Below are positions 41,155-64,000 of a stretch of DNA of 64,000 nucleotides, piece by piece. Each line of letters begins with the position of its first letter. Within the stretch, counting starts at the first letter, position 1. The notes under the pieces are model-generated. The model did no database searches. It saw only the letters and a list, made by a program, of their open reading frames with translations, and had not been told where the DNA came from. Both the position numbers and the translations under genes were made by a program. The stretch lies in the sequence record MW760841.1; one strand, 5' to 3'.

Positions 41155-42608
41155 TTCGTTTATATTCCTTGAATGCCTGCACCAATGCACTGCGCATTCT
41201 GAAACAAAGTGGCCTTCGCCTGAGCGCCGATGCCGACTCCCCGGTTGCGGTACTGAACCGTGCAACCACCCAACAGTCTGTGCTGGACAGTTCCATCACT
41301 GACGAGCAGTTCTTCCAGGAACTGCCAAACATCACCGCACTGGCCCAACCGGCCCAGGGGACGGGTGATGCTGCCGTGATTGCTGACGGTGCCGCTGGCG
41401 TGAACGTGTTGAACGTGGAAGACCACGAACCAACACTGTTCGAGCTGAAGAAAATGGCCGTGGGCCGTTGTGCTGGTCTGCTCGACTTCTCCCGTAACGT
41501 GGTACAACCGTTTATTCAGAACGTGATTCAGAATAACGACTCGTCTCCGGTGGAAGAAGTGAAAGAAGACTGGGCACTGGTTCCGGTTGATTCTGACCCG
41601 GCGATTAACGAACCGATCGTGCAAGCCCTGATTAACCGTCTGGACAACCCAGCGGGTGCAGGCTTTACTCACGAGCGTATCGATGCGCGTGTGCCGGATG
41701 TGCTGGAAGTTCCAGAAACCGGTAAGGCATCCTTCGACCGTCTGGTAGGTCGTCTGCTGGAAGAACTGGGTCTGTCTGTCTCCGACGCGACGAAGCTGCT
41801 GGTTGAGCCACTGGTGATTGTCCCGAACTCTGACCAGGCTCCGAAAGAAGTTAAAAAGAACGTGCTGTTCCTGCTGCTGTCTGCCTACTGGCTGGACAAC
41901 CCGTGGGCGAACTCTGATCTGAATTCCGACAAATGGAAAACTCAGTTCCAGCGTGCGCATTACTCCCTGTGTGGTTGGTTGTACCTGTACGCCGAAGCCA
42001 TCGTGACACGCGTCAAGCTGGGGAATATCGTGTTCTCCTTCGATAGCCAGGAAAAGCAAGTCTTCATCTGTCAGGAAGCATTTGACGATTACGCCTCTGC
42101 GGGTGGTACCGTTGAAGCGCTGCTGGGTGCAGTCTATGCGCTGGATGACGGGGAAGATGCTGCCACCACCAAAACTGCGCTGCTGGATAACGCCGCTGCC
42201 TTTACTCAGGCATGGTCACGTCGTAGTTCTGTGCGTCGCATGAATGCCGACACTGACTGGCTGCACCGTAACCGTGAATCGCTGAAAGTGGCCTTTGCCA
42301 CGGCTATCGATACACTGGACCCAGGCTACCTGAATGCCGGTGACGAAGCGCAGCGTACTCCGGCCGAAGTGAAGAAAGGTGTTAACAGCGCCATCGATCA
42401 CCTGTTCGGTAAATCCACTACCGATGTCACTGAATTCATTATCCAGGTTTCTTCTGGTGAAGTCTTCGGTGAGTATGACGCTGCCAACCTGTTGACCGCT
42501 ATCCACCACGGAATGATTAAAGGCGTTAAGCCAGAAGTCACGGCCAGTGATTGGATTGTCAACTACGCCATGGACTGGATGCTGGCTGGCGTTCTTATCG
42601 AAGCTTAA
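41151..42608 (+). CDS. Putative internal head/ejection protein
   Basis: 485-aa ORF with strong codon bias, between the vRNAP beta and protease genes (SPN3US gp243/phiKZ gp177 position; inference). Confidence 0.55.
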   Translation: MIRLYSLNACTNALRILKQSGLRLSADADSPVAVLNRATTQQSVLDSSITDEQFFQELPNITALAQPAQGTGDAAVIADGAAGVNVLNVEDHEPTLFELKKMAVGRCAGLLDFSRNVVQPFIQNVIQNNDSSPVEEVKEDWALVPVDSDPAINEPIVQALINRLDNPAGAGFTHERIDARVPDVLEVPETGKASFDRLVGRLLEELGLSVSDATKLLVEPLVIVPNSDQAPKEVKKNVLFLLLSAYWLDNPWANSDLNSDKWKTQFQRAHYSLCGWLYLYAEAIVTRVKLGNIVFSFDSQEKQVFICQEAFDDYASAGGTVEALLGAVYALDDGEDAATTKTALLDNAAAFTQAWSRRSSVRRMNADTDWLHRNRESLKVAFATAIDTLDPGYLNAGDEAQRTPAEVKKGVNSAIDHLFGKSTTDVTEFIIQVSSGEVFGEYDAANLLTAIHHGMIKGVKPEVTASDWIVNYAMDWMLAGVLIEA

Positions 42609-43355: not shown

Positions 43356-44159
43356 ATGGAAAACTTAACGATGCGCTACAACTGCGTAGCGTTGGCCGGG
43401 GTAAACAAAGGGGCAACCCTGAAGAAAGACGCGGACGGTTACTACTACGTCCTGCTGGGGGCGTTGAACATCTTCAACTCCGAAGGTATCTTCTATGCCT
43501 TCAATGAGTCGAAGCATGTGTTCGACCGTTCAAGCGTCTTCATGCGTAAGATTCAGGCAGGGAACCTGTTTGGTGAAGAAGACCATCCTCCGTACGAGCA
43601 GGGGATGTCTGATGCGCAATGGATTGAGCGTAACGAATGGATTGAAACCAAGAACGTGGCCATGCACATCCGTGAAATCGAGCTGAAGCCGACTGACCAG
43701 ATGTGTAACAACTTGCCAGTGGTGGAAATCTGGGGATGGATTAAGCCGAACCGCGATCGCGGTCCGCTGTTGGCGGAAGCGTTAGAGAACCAGCACCAAA
43801 ACGTGTGCTTCTCTCTGCGTGCGATTGTGCGTGAAGGGTTTGTTGGTGGGGTGCGTACCCGTCGTATTGACCGTATGGTTACTTTCGACTGGGTTATCGA
43901 AGACGGTCTGCAAATCTGTAACAAATACTCCGCTATGCAGCGTGGTAGTCAGGTTGCGCAAGAATCGACCCGCACATACGTTGACCGCCCTATCTCTCGC
44001 CAGGCGCTGGAAGATATCATCTTCAAGCCAGAGGCCGCACAGACGGTAGCGACGGAATCCCGTCGTGGTAATCTGCGAGAAATCGCTCGTGAGTACCTGA
44101 CCATTGACAGCCAACAGTCCAATGTGAAGGTCATGGGGTTAGGCGCGGGGAAATGGTAA
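43356..44159 (+). CDS. Prohead (maturation) serine protease
   Basis: GEEDHPP (His), CFSLRA (Ser, FSxR motif), TFDWV (Asp); phiKZ gp175/SPN3US gp245-like size and position. Confidence 0.8.
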   Translation: MENLTMRYNCVALAGVNKGATLKKDADGYYYVLLGALNIFNSEGIFYAFNESKHVFDRSSVFMRKIQAGNLFGEEDHPPYEQGMSDAQWIERNEWIETKNVAMHIREIELKPTDQMCNNLPVVEIWGWIKPNRDRGPLLAEALENQHQNVCFSLRAIVREGFVGGVRTRRIDRMVTFDWVIEDGLQICNKYSAMQRGSQVAQESTRTYVDRPISRQALEDIIFKPEAAQTVATESRRGNLREIAREYLTIDSQQSNVKVMGLGAGKW

Positions 44160-55821: not shown

Positions 55822-57933
55822 ATGATTCTACGCGAATCGGACTGGGGCTACTATCCGGGAGCCATTGTCGATGACACCACCAAGAATAAACACTTTATCC
55901 GTTTTGCGGATAGTCTGCGTAAGCTTGGCGTACGGCACTGGTATTTGGTGCTGGCTTTACACAATCCGGAACTGCAAGGCGTTGACCCCCACGCTCCTGA
56001 CCTGACCCTGCAACAGCAAGGGATGATTGTCGAAGAGTGTGCCGAGAACCCGTGGTATTACCTGCGTGAATGCGTCAGGGTGCCTGCGGATGGTACCGAC
56101 GGGGTACCGTTCAAGATTGACCGTGGTAACTTTGCGATGTTCTGGATTTTCTTCAACAACATCGACTCCGGTATCGAGTTCCTCCGTCAGCACGGTAAGA
56201 CGGTCGGTATGTGTTCCTTGATGAGTTGGTTGCTGCGCTTCCTGGAGAAGTCACGTACCATTCTGGTTACCAAGGGGCCGGTGCTGCGTGAAGAAACCAT
56301 CACCAAACTGAAAGAGCTGCGTAACAGCTTACCGAAGTATCTGTGGCCAGTCCATCCGGATGACCCGGATAACAAAGAAGCCTTTGCCTGCATGGCGCAG
56401 GGTAACAAACTGATTACCGCCATCGGTCAGAACGATGAGCAATCAGCAAATGGTGTGGGCCGTGGCTTAACCGCCGGTCGTCTGTTCTCGGATGAAGGCC
56501 CCTTCACCAACAATATCCACATCATCTTACCTGCGGCACTGGCATCCGGTACGGCGGCGCGTAACATCAACGAAGCTAACGGCGTGCCTTACGGTAACGT
56601 GTTCGCTACAACACCTGGGGACTTAGCCACACCGGAAGGCGCGTACATGTACGAGCTGATGAACTCCGGCATCGTGTGGGATGAACGCTTTATCGATATC
56701 CCAACGCGTGAACGTTTGATTGCGCTGATTCTGAAGAACTCCATGCGTCCGAAGATGCCGCGTGTCATGTTCTACGTGAAGTTCAACCATCGTCAGTTAG
56801 GCACCTCGGATGAGAAGCTCGCTGCGATGATTGCCAACGCCACCGGTAGTGGTGATCAGATTCGTCGTGACTTTGGTGGGGAATGGACAACGGGTGGTTT
56901 CAACAAACCGTTCTCCGGGGAAGATGCGAAGCGCATGAACGGCTCGCGTATTCGTCCGATATTCAAAGACGTCAGTCCGTCAAACTACATCACCGACTGG
57001 TTCTACAAAGAAGAAGACATGACTATCAAACTCCAGGATCGGCATATCCTCGGACTCGATACGTCAGAAGCGGTTGGTCGCGACGCCATCGCTATGTCTA
57101 TCGTCAACTCGGTGACGGCAGAGTATGCCGGGAAATTGACCATCAACGAAACCAACGTTATCGGCTTTGCGATACACCTGGCGGAGTTCATGGTGAAGTA
57201 CAGCAACACCGTGTTGATTCTGGAACGACGCTCGACCGGGTCATCGGTCGCGGATGCGATTATCCTCCAGTTGCAATCCAAGGTACCGGACCTCCACCGC
57301 CGTCTGTATGTGAAGATTACGCAGGACTACAGCCGCAACGACGAATTGTATAAGGAGTACGCCCGTGGACCTGGGAATCGACCAGAAATCTTCTGGGATA
57401 AATTCCGAAAATATATCGGGTTTGCGACCGATGGCGAAAAACGTAAGAAATTATATGGTGAGGTATTCACCATGGCCCTGCGACTCTCGGCACACCTGTT
57501 GCGCAGTGGCGAATTGATCGACCAAATCCTGAGCCTGGTGGAGCGGAACGGACGTATCGACCACCAACGGTCCGGTCACGATGACTTAGTCATTTCGTGG
57601 CTACTGGCGATGTGGTTACTAATCTTCGGCAAGAACTTGAACCACTATGGGATAAGTAACAACCGACTGATGATTCGTAACCGTAACATGCTTACTGGTG
57701 ATGGAGAAGACAAGGACGAGGACGCGCAGGTCGAGCAAGAGGAGCGGCAACAAGAACTGATGGGAGAAATCGAAGTCGTCATGAAACAAATGGTCGGAGT
57801 TAGTTGCCCAGTCCGCCAGATGTCCATGCGGGCACGATTGCAGTCCCTCATCGATCAACTTGAAACTGACGTGAGAAACGTCGCATCGATGGAGAGCTTG
57901 AAAGAGCTTATCCAGCGCCAGAGGATGAAGTGA
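55822..57933 (+). CDS. terL: Terminase large subunit
   Basis: ENPWYYLRE, Walker A RQHGKT, Walker B LFSDEGPF, coupling motif ATTP, nuclease LGLDTSE and HDDLVISWL. Confidence 0.92.
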   Translation: MILRESDWGYYPGAIVDDTTKNKHFIRFADSLRKLGVRHWYLVLALHNPELQGVDPHAPDLTLQQQGMIVEECAENPWYYLRECVRVPADGTDGVPFKIDRGNFAMFWIFFNNIDSGIEFLRQHGKTVGMCSLMSWLLRFLEKSRTILVTKGPVLREETITKLKELRNSLPKYLWPVHPDDPDNKEAFACMAQGNKLITAIGQNDEQSANGVGRGLTAGRLFSDEGPFTNNIHIILPAALASGTAARNINEANGVPYGNVFATTPGDLATPEGAYMYELMNSGIVWDERFIDIPTRERLIALILKNSMRPKMPRVMFYVKFNHRQLGTSDEKLAAMIANATGSGDQIRRDFGGEWTTGGFNKPFSGEDAKRMNGSRIRPIFKDVSPSNYITDWFYKEEDMTIKLQDRHILGLDTSEAVGRDAIAMSIVNSVTAEYAGKLTINETNVIGFAIHLAEFMVKYSNTVLILERRSTGSSVADAIILQLQSKVPDLHRRLYVKITQDYSRNDELYKEYARGPGNRPEIFWDKFRKYIGFATDGEKRKKLYGEVFTMALRLSAHLLRSGELIDQILSLVERNGRIDHQRSGHDDLVISWLLAMWLLIFGKNLNHYGISNNRLMIRNRNMLTGDGEDKDEDAQVEQEERQQELMGEIEVVMKQMVGVSCPVRQMSMRARLQSLIDQLETDVRNVASMESLKELIQRQRMK

Positions 57934-59621: not shown

Positions 59622-59642
59622 GATAGATATTATCCTTGTGAC
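59622..59642 (+). promoter_or_regulatory. Putative early promoter
   Basis: GATAGATATTATCCT, near-identical to the 4387 motif. Confidence 0.65.
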
Positions 59643-61377: not shown

Positions 61378-61899
61378 ATGTACCAACTCGTTGACATTAT
61401 CGATATCATGGTGGGCGACTACGACCATTGCCCTACCTGGAAAGAATTGAACCTCAGTACCCGTGCGGTACTGGACGTCGGTCACAGTTACAAAAACAAT
61501 CCGGTGCTCGTGCACTTGGAAAACGGTCGGGCTACCGATTTCCAAATCCTGGAGACGATCGGTGACAGATTGCCTGTTTACATCAATGAGCCGTTCTCAG
61601 CGCCGCTGAGAGACGAGTTAGCGAAAGTCCTACACGTACAGACCCTGGTGGAGAAAGACGCTGTGATAGCCGTTGTAGGCGTCGAGAACGCGGCCTCCGA
61701 TATACGTGCCAATCTGGTTTCCATGTCGGTGCCAGGATCAGTGCAAAAGGATGCCAAATTCCGGGATTACTGTGCCAAGCTTATCAACCAGCAACCCGAT
61801 GACACCACCATGATTATCGTGGTGCCGTACACCGAAGAGAACATGCACGAATTCCTGCCTCGCGGCTTCGTGATTATGGATTACGTTTATTTCCTCTAA
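61378..61899 (+). CDS. Hypothetical protein, paralog A
   Basis: 173 aa, GAGG RBS, similar to the next ORF. Confidence 0.7.
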   Translation: MYQLVDIIDIMVGDYDHCPTWKELNLSTRAVLDVGHSYKNNPVLVHLENGRATDFQILETIGDRLPVYINEPFSAPLRDELAKVLHVQTLVEKDAVIAVVGVENAASDIRANLVSMSVPGSVQKDAKFRDYCAKLINQQPDDTTMIIVVPYTEENMHEFLPRGFVIMDYVYFL

Positions 61900-61922
61900 A
61901 CCCAGCCTGTCAAGGAGTACCT

Positions 61923-62462
61923 ATGTTCCTGTTACAAACCCACACCGATATTCTCACTAACCCAATCTACCGCACCTGCAAAGAGGCGAAAGAATTCCTG
62001 TTCCCCGTTAGCATGGCGCATATGGAAGCCTTACGTCAACGTCGTTACCTGGCAACGATTGAGAACGGGGTAGCCGTCCGTCTGCAAATGCTGACCGCCG
62101 TGGATAACACCATCTACATCTACGTCGACAAATATTCGCCGTTGATTGAGAAAGAGCTATCAATGGCCCTGCGTCGTGATCTCCATGAATACCCAGGGAA
62201 TTTCTTCGTGGCCTGTGAGGCAGAGGGACGTGACCGGAACATGCGGGCTGCGACGTTTGGCTTTACCATTCCGGAAGAACTCCAGTCACTGAATGCGTTG
62301 ACGCCTATCATCGGTGAAAAGAATGCGCGGGAGCAAATGCAATTCATTAGCCAACTCCAACCGGGTCATGAATTGGTGATGAACTGGACACCGGATGAAT
62401 TGATGGCTGAGCACTTCACGACGATGGGTCTCAAATTCGTCACGGTGTTTTATCCGCTGTAA
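61923..62462 (+). CDS. Hypothetical protein, paralog B
   Basis: 179 aa, AAGGAG RBS, similar to the preceding ORF. Confidence 0.7.
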   Translation: MFLLQTHTDILTNPIYRTCKEAKEFLFPVSMAHMEALRQRRYLATIENGVAVRLQMLTAVDNTIYIYVDKYSPLIEKELSMALRRDLHEYPGNFFVACEAEGRDRNMRAATFGFTIPEELQSLNALTPIIGEKNAREQMQFISQLQPGHELVMNWTPDELMAEHFTTMGLKFVTVFYPL

Positions 62463-62466
62463 AATC

Positions 62467-62497
62467 GGGGAGCTTCGGCTCCCTGTTTTTTTTGTTT
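62467..62497 (+). terminator. Intrinsic terminator
   Basis: GGGGAGC-TTCG-GCTCCCT then a T-run. Confidence 0.85.
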
Positions 62498-62521
62498 CAA
62501 GCCTTGGTACTGCTCACTTTT

Positions 62522-62552
62522 TAACCAGATATTGGTTACAAAATAACCAGTG
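62522..62552. repeat. Palindromic repeat copy 1 (TGGTTA-N5-TAACCA) with an extra half-site
   Basis: TAACCA-GATAT-TGGTTA-CAAAA-TAACCA-GTG. Confidence 0.8.
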
Positions 62553-62800
62553 TGAAATACCGTCTAGAATCGCTCAGAAAGCGTTGTTACCCTAACCCGG
62601 TACACTTGGGTTCCCAAGGGGTCATTCTCTTCACACAGAGCGATACAGAAAGAATTAGCGCCATCCCCGACCCACCGTTCCGCCTCCGACGTCATCCGCC
62701 CGCGCCGAATCGCCGATCTAAATCTGGGTACCGCTTTGCGGAATTGGGGATTTAAAACAGGGAAATCTGACAAACGAATCTTCGTGAGTTTGTCCTGGAT

Positions 62801-62820
62801 TTGGTTATTTCTTGACCAGT
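62801..62820. repeat. Palindromic repeat copy 2 (one mismatch)
   Basis: TTGGTTA-TTTCT-TGACCA-GT. Confidence 0.65.
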
Positions 62821-62979
62821 TTGACTAGCCAGCCTCCAGCTGGCTTAAACTCATTCAAACAAAAAAATTCTCTTTTAAAAACAGTTACTTACATTCTATC
62901 TACCCTACCCCTCCGGGGGTAGGGAGAAAAATCCTTCTATTAGACGCGATCACGCGTCACGCGTTTCCTCCAGGATCTT

Positions 62980-63072
62980 TTAAAAGAATATATTTATATT
63001 AATTATAATTATCCCGTAGGGATAATAATTAAATATAATTAAAACTAATAAACTCTTTGAGTTATAAATTAC
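62980..63072. other. Extremely AT-rich segment with a central inverted repeat (origin/unwinding-element-like)
   Basis: Nearly all A/T around ATTATCCC-GTA-GGGATAAT (63008-63026), unlike the roughly half-GC coding DNA. Confidence 0.6.
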
Positions 63073-63119
63073 TATCGCGGGCACGTAGGCGCGCGTGCGA
63101 GTCCTTAGCTGCCGAAAAG

Positions 63120-63140
63120 CTGGTTAAAAAATAACCAGTG
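63120..63140. repeat. Palindromic repeat copy 3
   Basis: CTGGTTA-AAAAA-TAACCAG-TG; 63121-63140 matches 62533-62552 at 19/20. Confidence 0.8.
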
Positions 63141-63168
63141 AAAATCCAATTACAGATTTCCCCAGTGT

Positions 63169-63773
63169 TATGCTCGCTGGCATGACTCGACCCGTGCCGG
63201 TACCAGATACCCCTGGCTGGAAAGTTTGGCCAGGGGGCTTTTCGAGCCCAACTCATCAACAGGGTGAGACGCGATTTGCTGGCGAACGTTGCCGGGTACG
63301 GTCCCGCTGTGTCGATCCCACAGCGGGTATTTTTCTCATCCTGACTGGATTGCTGTGTTCGCCTCGGTAACTCGGGGCGCTTTTTCGAGAGTCCTCACCA
63401 GGGTTGTCGACAAAGCGAAATACGTTCGACCTAACACCGACGTGATTTTGTTTTAGTATGTTCAAGAGTTTCAGGTGCCCGTTACAGGGTTCCGCGGTAG
63501 CCCCAGGCAGAGCCTTGCCCTGGCGGACCGTCATCCGTCGTCCTTGCCGGTGAACTTACCACTGGCCTATCGTCGGTGAGCGTTCTCCTGGGGTGCGACC
63601 GAATTCGGCGTTGCGTCGAAAAACTCCCAGCGTGTAGAACCGCTGGGTTGGGGGAATATCTCCGAAGCGAGGTGGTCCATTGGTCTTGGCGGCTCGGAAA
63701 GACGAGAGGGGGGTGTCTGCACTCTGCGAAGCGTTCGGACATCGCTGAACCAAATTCTAACCAGGAGATAACC
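63169..63773 (+). ncRNA. Candidate structured ncRNA(s) or long 5' leader
   Basis: No credible ORF; hairpins at 63210-63236, 63235-63249, 63303-63327, 63360-63379 and CCCAGCG/CGCTGGG near 63630; TATG-type motifs at 63166 and 63453. Confidence 0.4.
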
Positions 63774-64000
63774 ATGAGCGCTATGACGCTTGAAGAGCTA
63801 CTACCAACGCGAATGCCTTGCGAGGTATTCTTCCCACGTAACGGCGAACCGGTGCCAGTTGCCGAGGTTGTCACCTGGTTACGTACCGGATGTCCGAAGA
63901 TTCACCACCTGCACGCTGCCTGCCTCGAGAAAGTTTTCGAGACGGTTGCATTCCAGCCATTCCCCAACGGGGAAGCGATGGCGGTTGTCGGTATGACCCG
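63774..64000 (+). CDS. Hypothetical protein, 3'-truncated by window end (not in ORF track)
   Basis: AGGAG RBS at 63763-63767, then ATG 63774, open to the end: MSAMTLEELLPTRMPCEVFFPRNGEPVPVAEVVTWLRTGCPKIHHLHAACLEKVFETVAFQPFPNGEAMAVVGMT. Confidence 0.7.
   Translation, partial: MSAMTLEELLPTRMPCEVFFPRNGEPVPVAEVVTWLRTGCPKIHHLHAACLEKVFETVAFQPFPNGEAMAVVGMT

Follow-up and report, generated by a model that had tools for sequence, protein, structure and literature searches.

What recognizes the palindromes near the end of the genome of the Erwinia phage pEa_SNUABM_4, and what might they control? A 64,000-nucleotide stretch of sequence record MW760841.1, which was analysed as a whole and is called the window here, corresponds to the end of this SPN3US-like Machinavirus genome (249,193 bp) and contains three spaced copies of the dyad TGGTTA-N5-TRACCA that bracket an AT-rich core. 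The initial annotation of the window took these dyads to be binding sites for a dimeric protein and listed four possible functions, namely iterons of a replication origin, a packaging signal, a genome-anchoring site for the phage nucleus and an operator array. We find that the dyads belong to a set of four near-consensus sites of the type bound by Fis, and that these four sites are confined to one conserved non-coding region. By BLAST the dyad region is 100% identical to positions 247593–248993 of the pEa_SNUABM_4 record MW812338.1. Positions given below are those of the window, which equal record positions minus 185193, and the whole genome was rebuilt from the public record for genome-wide scans.

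The three dyads lie exactly where the initial annotation had placed them: site 1 at 62533–62549 (TGGTTACAAAATAACCA, TGGTTA-CAAAA-TAACCA), site 2 at 62802–62818 (TGGTTATTTCTTGACCA, TGGTTA-TTTCT-TGACCA) and site 3 at 63121–63137 (TGGTTAAAAAATAACCA, TGGTTA-AAAAA-TAACCA). Their start-to-start distances are 269 and 319 bp, in agreement with the proposed spacing of about 270 and 320 bp, and the first and third copies match at 19 of 20 positions (62533–62552 against 63121–63140), as had been claimed. An additional TAACCA half-site reported 5 nt to the 5′ side of site 1 (62522–62527) is present too, but rather than being an isolated half it forms the right half of a fourth, degenerate Fis-type site, site 0 (62511–62527; TGCTCA-CTTTT-TAACCA). 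The centres of sites 0 and 1 are 22 bp apart. Sites 0, 1, 2 and 3 match the consensus half-sites at 10, 12, 11 and 12 of 12 positions, respectively.

All four sites fall within a 1,312-bp gap (62463–63774) that contains no annotated gene, consistent with the large gene-free stretch that had been described. The gap extends from a strong terminator following the open reading frame (ORF) at 61923–62462 to an ORF that starts at 63775 and passes the end of the record; beyond it lie small ORFs and 12 tRNA genes. Positions 62463–63255 lack any ORF of 75 or more amino acids, and the only longer ORF-free stretch of the genome is the tRNA cluster. The large terminase gene, terL (55822–57933), is nearby as stated, about 4.6 kb upstream of the dyads.

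The closest known match to the dyads, which the initial annotation missed, is the Fis-binding sequence. This motif is given as GNTYAAAWTTTRANC in a review (PMC6907758) and as TGGTTAAATTTTAACCA in the information-theory consensus for Escherichia coli Fis (Shultzaberger et al. 2007, PMC2018646). In the same information model the strongest possible site, from −10 to +10, is ATTGGTTAAATTTTAACCAAT (14.9 bits), the probe core used in electrophoretic mobility shift assays was GGTTAAATTTTAACC, and the E. coli genome is reported not to contain the 21-bp consensus (Shultzaberger et al. 2007, PMC2018646). A Fis site comprises a 15-bp A/T-rich core bounded by G/C at ±7, where Arg85 makes contacts, and has pyrimidine–purine (Y–R) steps at ±3–4; T/A is favoured at ±8, G at −8 is inhibitory, and T at +4 or A at −4 is disfavoured (Hancock et al. 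2016, PMC4784862). The palindrome TGGTTA-N5-TAACCA coincides with positions −8 to −3 and +3 to +8 of the Fis consensus and has the correct 5-bp A/T-rich centre, and the variable base previously noted in T(A/G)ACCA corresponds to R at +4 of the Fis motif.

G at −7 and C at +7 occur in all four window sites and in every site found in relatives, which comprised 13 isolate genomes (sites at aligned positions) and 6 further relatives from IMG/VR (sites heading the gap). The central segments from −2 to +2 (CTTTT, CAAAA, TTTCT and AAAAA for sites 0 to 3) each contain at most one G/C, a TA or TG step is found at both ±(3–4) positions in 4/4 sites, and T at −8 together with A at +8 is likewise present in 4/4. 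In some orthologues position +8 is G, the counterpart of C at −8, a base that is only moderately unfavourable. As sequence elements, the four sites pass every in silico criterion for a Fis site.

For genome-wide counting we used a strict Fis rule: G at −7, Y at −4, A at −3, no more than one G/C in the centre, T at +3, R at +4 and C at +7. Applied as a positive control upstream of E. coli rrnB P1, a seven-feature version of the rule identified 15-mers at −69, −100 and −141 from an approximate transcription start site. The classical Fis sites I–III of this promoter are at −71, −102 and −143, and we attribute the uniform 2-nt offset to the approximate start site. The phage sites are nearer to the Fis consensus than are the rrnB P1 sites that were checked.

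A scan of all 249,193 bp finds the perfect palindrome TGGTTA-N5-TAACCA only at sites 1 and 3, the outcome that the initial annotation had said would support a unique locus. Other dyads with one mismatch occur only at record positions 42288 and 51337, where they have G/C-rich spacers and lie within annotated coding sequences, leaving the three dyads as the sole A/T-spacer copies in the pEa_SNUABM_4 genome. No dyad arose in 100 dinucleotide-preserving shuffles of the window (mean 0.00). The outer consensus GNTYA-N5-TRANC has 7 matches in the window against 3.6 expected, and the four of these that are inside the gap are the only ones with A/T-rich centres, the other three being G/C-rich. Under the strict rule there is no overall excess of sites in the 249-kb genome (29, compared with 35 ± 5 in shuffles), whereas the gap holds 4 against 0.15 expected. 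T at −8 combined with A at +8 is seen in 4/4 gap sites but in just 2 of the 25 other strict-rule sites of the genome. Shuffling the dinucleotides of the gap itself gives a mean of 0.22 sites, and four sites were reached in 1 of 2,000 such shuffles.

The region is common to other members of Machinavirus (ChrisDB, pEa_SNUABM_9, Caitlin, the Parshik/Huxley/Machina group, pEa_SNUABM_6/10/43 and pSal-SNUABM-04) and also to Erskinevirus (phiEaH2 and Asesino) and Seoulvirus (SPN3US, SPAsTU and SaP7). We aligned and scanned the gap in the 13 isolate genomes and retrieved the 6 IMG/VR relatives through an invariant RNA motif. A Fis-type site heads the gap in 13/13 isolates, 404–450 bp upstream of a conserved anchor in the AT-rich core. 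At the position of site 1, all 13 aligned isolates have a rule-compliant site in which the right half and the T-tract are near-constant and the left half is variable. This site forms a conserved island of about 17–19 bp with 1.44 bits per position, compared with 0.68 and 0.90 bits in its flanks.

The remaining sites are distributed more narrowly. Site 0 is conserved in ChrisDB, SNUABM_9, Caitlin, Asesino, phiEaH2, SPAsTU, SaP7 and the IMG/VR relatives L140 and L141, and the second copy at the head of the gap stands upstream of the first, at a distance of 22 bp in Erskinevirus and the SNUABM_4 clade but of about 200 bp in Seoulvirus. All nine Machinavirus genomes compared have site 2, which phiEaH2 and Asesino lack. 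Site 3 occurs only in SNUABM_4/8, ChrisDB, SNUABM_9 and Caitlin; it co-occurs with about 185 bp of a downstream segment (module B, described below), both being missing in the Parshik group. Among the IMG/VR relatives, L124 and L147 carry TGGTTATTTTTTAACCA and L148 and L149 carry TGGTCACTTTTTAACCA, 1.3–1.9 kb upstream of the RNA motif, and L140 and L141 have 2 or 3 sites at matching offsets from the AT-core anchor.

Across the 13 isolates and 6 IMG/VR relatives the left halves read GGTTA, GCTCA, GTACA, GTTCA, GTTTA, GATTA, GGTCA, GGTTG or GTATG, and the right halves TAACC, TGACC, TAATC, TAGCC, TGGCC or TGAAC. G at −7, Y at −4, R at −3, Y at +3, R at +4 and C at +7 are invariant among orthologues, with T at +3 in all but one of the scanned sites, and the drifting positions are −6, where all four bases are found, and +6, where three are. 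This variation is the degeneracy of the Fis motif. Conserved islands of 17–19 bp at a single locus, bracketing the most AT-rich 100 bp, also lend support to the earlier proposal that the dyads are sites for a dimeric protein. That core of the initial annotation is supported, and the four functions it offered are candidates.

On balance, the sequence evidence leans slightly towards the dyads being Fis-type sites that were selected for binding by Fis. Fis from Erwinia tasmaniensis, E. piriflorinigrans, E. persicina and others is identical to that of E. coli K-12 over 98/98 residues (80 loci listed, with E. amylovora not among them), and binding data from E. coli therefore apply to the host genus. 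We infer that Fis itself may well be the ligand in infected cells. On binding, a Fis dimer, or a protein of the same specificity, would introduce a bend of about 65–70 degrees at each site (PMC4784862), and the bends at sites 0 and 1 would add to one another because these sites are about two helical turns apart. Acting as upstream or architectural elements, the bends would probably help to open or activate the AT-rich core (62972–63075), which sites 2 and 3 flank. They would probably also promote transcription of the stable-RNA/tRNA cluster beyond the gap and of the non-coding RNA modules that fill its downstream half, by analogy with the Fis sites of rRNA and tRNA promoters. Alternatively, bending sites beside an AT-rich unwinding element could make up an origin; if Fis binds, we rank the promoter hub somewhat above the origin. 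Were Fis the ligand, there would be an exception to the view that these phages keep their DNA isolated from host proteins, and the growth phase of the host would influence either the expression of phage stable RNAs or phage replication.

A more far-reaching version of the Fis reading is distinctly unlikely to hold in full. It would have nucleus-forming jumbo phages keeping host-Fis consensus sites at a single large non-coding hub over at least three genera. Fis would reach the sequestered DNA in the early vesicle, in the nucleus or at an exposed stage, and would help to fire the first origin or stable-RNA control region to be defined in the Chimalliviridae, tying phage development to the growth state of the host.

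Several observations weigh against selection for Fis. No sigma-70-like promoter was found 60–75 bp downstream of any site, and sigma-70-like sequences are not in excess in the gap (2, with 1.3 expected) or the tRNA region (3, with 4.9 expected); because no such promoter was found at activation distance, classical Fis activation through contact with host RNA polymerase alpha is unsupported. The distance from the site to the AT core differs between genera (−438, −450, −404 and −424) in steps that do not correspond to whole helical turns, which disfavours a rigid architecture around the core. As the orthologous sites were located with the Fis rule, their compliance with it is partly circular; the non-circular part is that every lineage, despite the diverged left halves, satisfies at the aligned position a rule that any one position would pass by chance about 7 times in 10,000. 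The same palindrome is also found in many unrelated viral contigs, low-GC ones included, among the matches listed in an IMG/VR scan for the dyad TGGTTAAAWWWTAACCA. Given this recurrence the dyad alone is no proof of Fis, and the scan, with unrelated contigs among the matches listed, is uninformative on function. Formation of a phage nucleus has been shown for the relatives Asesino and SPN3US (PMC13282480). The nucleus of the Chimalliviridae, like the early vesicle that precedes it, is described as enclosing the phage DNA and keeping host defence factors out, so access of host Fis is unproven and perhaps unlikely. Finally, site 2 can pair at 6/6 positions on the plus strand in 9/9 Machinavirus genomes with the help of G–U pairs, compared with 4–5 of 6 on the other strand.

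The question of access leads to the alternative that the sites are bound by a phage-encoded dimeric protein that is imported into the nucleus and whose half-site, GGTTA/TAACC, coincides with or mimics that of Fis. We consider this unlikely. A phage ligand would be natural in phages that exclude host defence factors and import their own proteins. The restriction of perfect palindromes to one subclade suggests co-evolution with a clade-specific protein, and in the unrelated viral contigs among the matches listed some palindromes stand in repeated arrays. Nothing found, however, points to a phage-encoded ligand. Searches of the phage for a relative of Fis returned nothing better than E = 3 (tblastn) and E = 7.5 (phmmer). 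Eight proteins encoded next to the gap gave no informative Pfam or PHROG match and no DNA-binding domain or initiator, with one weak HslV-like match as the only hit, in domain searches that could miss DNA-binding folds of a distant or new type. Phages that share the dyads carry different genes immediately upstream of the gap. A match to the Fis consensus at 12/12 positions, with the right spacer length and composition and with Fis-like degeneracy, would moreover have to be a coincidence. If a phage protein should nonetheless prove to be the ligand, the sites would serve as bait with which to find it.

The pairing of site 2 bears on a further alternative, that the dyads act as RNA, forming plus-strand UGGUUA-loop-UAACCA hairpins for processing, stability or protein binding. 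In pEa_SNUABM_4 the half-sites form 6/6 pairs, most substitutions in close relatives keep plus-strand pairing through G–U, RNAalifold predicts the site 2 hairpin when run on Machinavirus alone, and the downstream half of the gap clearly encodes plus-strand RNA. Against these points, the site 1 orthologues of 8/13 genomes (TGTACA...TAACCA) pair at only 3/6 positions and yet are invariant. Loop composition differs between the sites, with A prevailing in 1 and 3 and T in 0 and 2, unlike the target of a single RNA-binding protein. In the half of the gap that holds the dyads, consensus folding energies are alike on the two strands (−10.9 versus −10.4 kcal/mol), and compensatory changes are within the range of shuffles. 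An incompletely paired yet invariant site 1, loops without fixed orientation and equal strand energies together favour recognition at the level of DNA, and we regard the RNA reading as very unlikely overall, keeping it as a minor rival mainly for site 2.

It is hardly probable that the sites are iterons of a replication origin at which a phage initiator melts the adjacent AT core, one of the functions that the initial annotation had listed. The core is the GC minimum of the genome, is deeply conserved and lies between sites 2 and 3, and no origin was found to be defined for these phages in the literature. Iterons nevertheless fit poorly: the elements are inverted dyads 22, 269 and 319 bp apart and not a tandem array of direct repeats, and Erskinevirus and Seoulvirus have the core without sites 2 and 3. 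DnaA-box and IHF consensus sequences are absent from the gap in 12/13 genomes, no initiator-like gene is recognizable among the eight neighbours, and GC skew, which the initial annotation had suggested comparing with the locus, tracks gene orientation, as does AT skew, so that neither points to an origin. The phage shows no enrichment of GATC. Apart from the AT-rich element, the locus does not have the features of an iteron origin.

That the sites are boxes of a pac signal, bound by terminase at the start of headful packaging, is similarly improbable: terL lies 4.6 kb upstream, many deposited records of the family begin or end in or next to the gap and one conserved box heads the gap in every relative, but record starts in the family appear arbitrary or copied from relatives, the pEa_SNUABM_4 record breaks inside an ORF, copy number ranges from 1 to 4 among close relatives and the Fis consensus match would be a coincidence. 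An operator array, also on the initial list, fits poorly as well, since no promoter was identified over the dyads, no regulator or helix-turn-helix gene was detected next to them and the upstream genes differ between phages that share the sites. Motifs of the PhoP, ArcA, CRP, FNR, LexA, DeoR, HipB and T4 MotA types were considered informally and dropped because their repeat orientation, spacing or bases do not fit.

Literature searches found no origin for SPN3US and no link between a jumbo phage and Fis. Neither for SPN3US-like nor for phiKZ-like phages did they show a defined origin, pac site or regulatory cis-element, which agrees with the remark of the initial annotation that it was not aware of such elements in phiKZ-like phages. 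In a 2026 review of jumbo phages, neither 'origin of replication' nor 'replication origin' appears. The kind of element described here is thus known, and its conserved cluster in nucleus-forming jumbo phages is, as far as our searches show, unreported.

Paired dyads of this kind were observed outside the family too. An unrelated 4-kb viral contig with 40% GC (IMGVR_UViG_3300025769_012489) has two exact copies of TGGTTAAAAAATAACCAGTT (2188–2204 and 2325–2341), 137 bp apart within a divergent intergenic region of about 700 bp, and in three further contigs (L026, L049 and L099) the same palindrome is embedded in longer repeats. Paired consensus Fis-type dyads may be a wider phage feature.

If the Fis-type sites serve transcription, the promoters on which they would act are not those used widely elsewhere in the genome. 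A recurrent plus-strand motif, an A/T-rich segment followed by ttcAG-ATAGATATTAT-CttaGGTGA, stands upstream of genes in about 25 copies, including those at 59623, 4388, 14067 and 45790 of the window, and is very likely the early promoter of the virion RNA polymerase. It fits the AT-rich motif near −10 of jumbo-phage virion polymerases (PMC7598289). Neither the gap nor the tRNA cluster contains a copy, and other promoters must therefore act there. The sequence AGATATT between sites 0 and 1, considered as a partial match to the early promoter, is not conserved, and neither are the −10/−35 candidates picked manually downstream of each site.

The upstream half of the gap (62490–63140) contains several conserved features besides the sites. 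The intrinsic terminator of the upstream operon (62466–62493, plus strand; GGGGAGCTTCGGCTCCC followed by T8) directly precedes site 0 and is kept with compensatory changes in relatives. The gap alignment reveals a near-invariant hairpin, AACCC-GGTACACTT-GGGTT (62593–62611), at about 54 bp from the centre of site 1, a distance that is almost fixed across three genera while the intervening sequence varies. Site 2 is flanked by two hairpins, GACAAAC...GTTTGTC just to its 5′ side (62769–62794), which has compensatory substitutions in Erskinevirus and Seoulvirus, and AGCCAGC-CTCCA-GCTGGCT just to its 3′ side (62827–62845), whose stem has been replaced in relatives with pairing kept. A short conserved palindrome with compensatory changes follows at about 62900–62926. 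On the plus strand, each of sites 1, 2 and 3 is located just upstream of a conserved block.

Two TCTTTTAAAA units (62858–62895 and 62976–63000), 105 bp apart, are conserved in all relatives, one just upstream of the AT core and the other at its edge, and some 30 bp beyond each lies a hairpin with GTAGGGA at its end. The first of them is a conserved plus-strand A/T block (AAAAAAATTCTCTTTTAAAAACAGTTACTTAC) that is promoter-like but distinct from the early-promoter motif. The idea that TCTTTTAAAA is a general promoter was dropped, as it occurs at only one other locus in the genome (record position 43489). The AT core itself contains AGGATC, the palindrome TCTTTTAAAAGA (62976–62987) and the hairpin ATTATCCC-GTA-GGGATAAT (63008–63026). 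It is the 100-bp segment of lowest GC content in the genome (15%, the next lowest having 24%), is near-invariant in close relatives and has an anchor motif kept in three genera. A sigma-70-like TTAAAA-18-TATAAT is present inside the core, where the AT-rich composition makes such matches easy to find.

The downstream half of the gap is occupied by plus-strand RNA elements. Module B (63140–63385) consists of three tandem terminator-like hairpins at about 63210–63242, 63303–63335 and 63360–63385, the first and third of which are followed by CTTTT(T)CGAG; the first stem has a compensatory change in SNUABM_9. Module C (63381–63756) is a conserved structured RNA of about 375 nt that ends just before the ORF at 63775. 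Across 12 genomes RNAalifold predicts 65 pairs in module C, 24 of them with compensatory changes, at −58.7 kcal/mol, compared with 10.6 pairs, 1.9 compensatory changes and −2.1 kcal/mol in column shuffles and −26.8 kcal/mol on the reverse strand. A long-range helix joins CUUUUUCGAG (63381–63390) to CUCGGAAAG (about 63693–63702), and the module includes the invariant stretch UCUUGGCGGCUCGGAAAGACGAGAGGGG. Neither the gap nor the gaps of four relatives matched Rfam 15 at E values up to 1, and ARAGORN detected no tRNA or transfer-messenger RNA in the gap. Module C is probably a new RNA family and may be more novel than the dyads. Pairing with module C is predicted for the U-tract of the third module B hairpin, a hint of alternative terminator/antiterminator folds or of a string of small RNAs.

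The ORF that starts at 63775 has a good ribosome-binding site (AGGAGATAACCATG), extends past the limits of both the window and the GenBank record and is unannotated in MW812338; its orthologue is annotated in pEa_SNUABM_9 (125 amino acids, phrog_20200, of unknown function) and, across the record junction, in pEa_SNUABM_10. Two minus-strand ORFs (63256–63534 and 63482–63874) overlap the conserved RNA/control region, as do 'hypothetical proteins' annotated in the gaps of relatives (ChrisDB gp287, Parshik gp278–279, Asesino gp287–289 and small coding sequences of phiEaH2). Indels of lengths not divisible by three and covariation of the RNA type suggest that none of these is a gene. Upstream of the gap, at 61378–62462 and its equivalents, one to four genes vary between otherwise collinear phages, and the 179-amino-acid ORF at 61923–62462 is shared only with Caitlin, so that the adjacent stretch looks like a hotspot for accessory genes. 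With its Fis-type sites, the AT-richest segment of the genome and a new structured RNA beside tRNAs, the gap is the best candidate for a control hub in this genome.

Comparison with known systems indicates where the locus is familiar and where it departs from precedent. In the recombinational enhancers of Hin, Gin and Cin, two Fis sites are 48 bp apart and the invertase gene is adjacent. The phage locus resembles these in having paired Fis-type sites on a phage or mobile element, but the pair is 22 bp apart and, in a search confined to the locus, no invertase gene adjoins it. A Hin-type enhancer was rejected on this difference in spacing.

Origins offer a second comparison. E. coli oriC and DARS2 combine an AT-rich unwinding element with Fis and IHF sites, and the primary origin of phage T7 combines one with promoters. 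The AT core of the phage gap is likewise predicted to be the easiest segment to melt, is flanked by sites of a bending type and is adjoined by the two promoter-like TCTTTTAAAA units. The gap differs from oriC and DARS2 in having no DnaA boxes, no IHF site (in 12/13 genomes) and no identified initiator.

The upstream activating regions of rrn and tRNA operons form the third. In rrnB P1, Fis sites at −71, −102 and −143 are combined with an A/T-rich UP element, and tyrT is an example of a tRNA promoter. In the phage gap, too, three or four Fis-type sites, with sites 0 and 1 about two helical turns apart, and a very A/T-rich segment come before stable RNAs, first the structured ones and then 12 tRNAs. 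An activating region of the rrn type was set aside, however, as no core promoter was found: the gap has no sigma-70 core promoter at the right distance, its spacings of 269 and 319 bp are far larger, and phiKZ-like phages transcribe their DNA with their own polymerases.

The nearest relatives of the four sites are the high-affinity Fis sites of the Enterobacterales. The setting is different in that the phage sites lie in a lytic jumbo phage with nucleus-forming relatives, where access for a host protein is doubtful. Yet the phage sites share with the Enterobacterales sites the half-sites, the 5-bp A/T-rich centre, T/A at ±8 and Y–R steps at ±3–4, they follow the same pattern of conservation and variation, and a Fis identical to that of E. 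coli is present in several species of the host genus.

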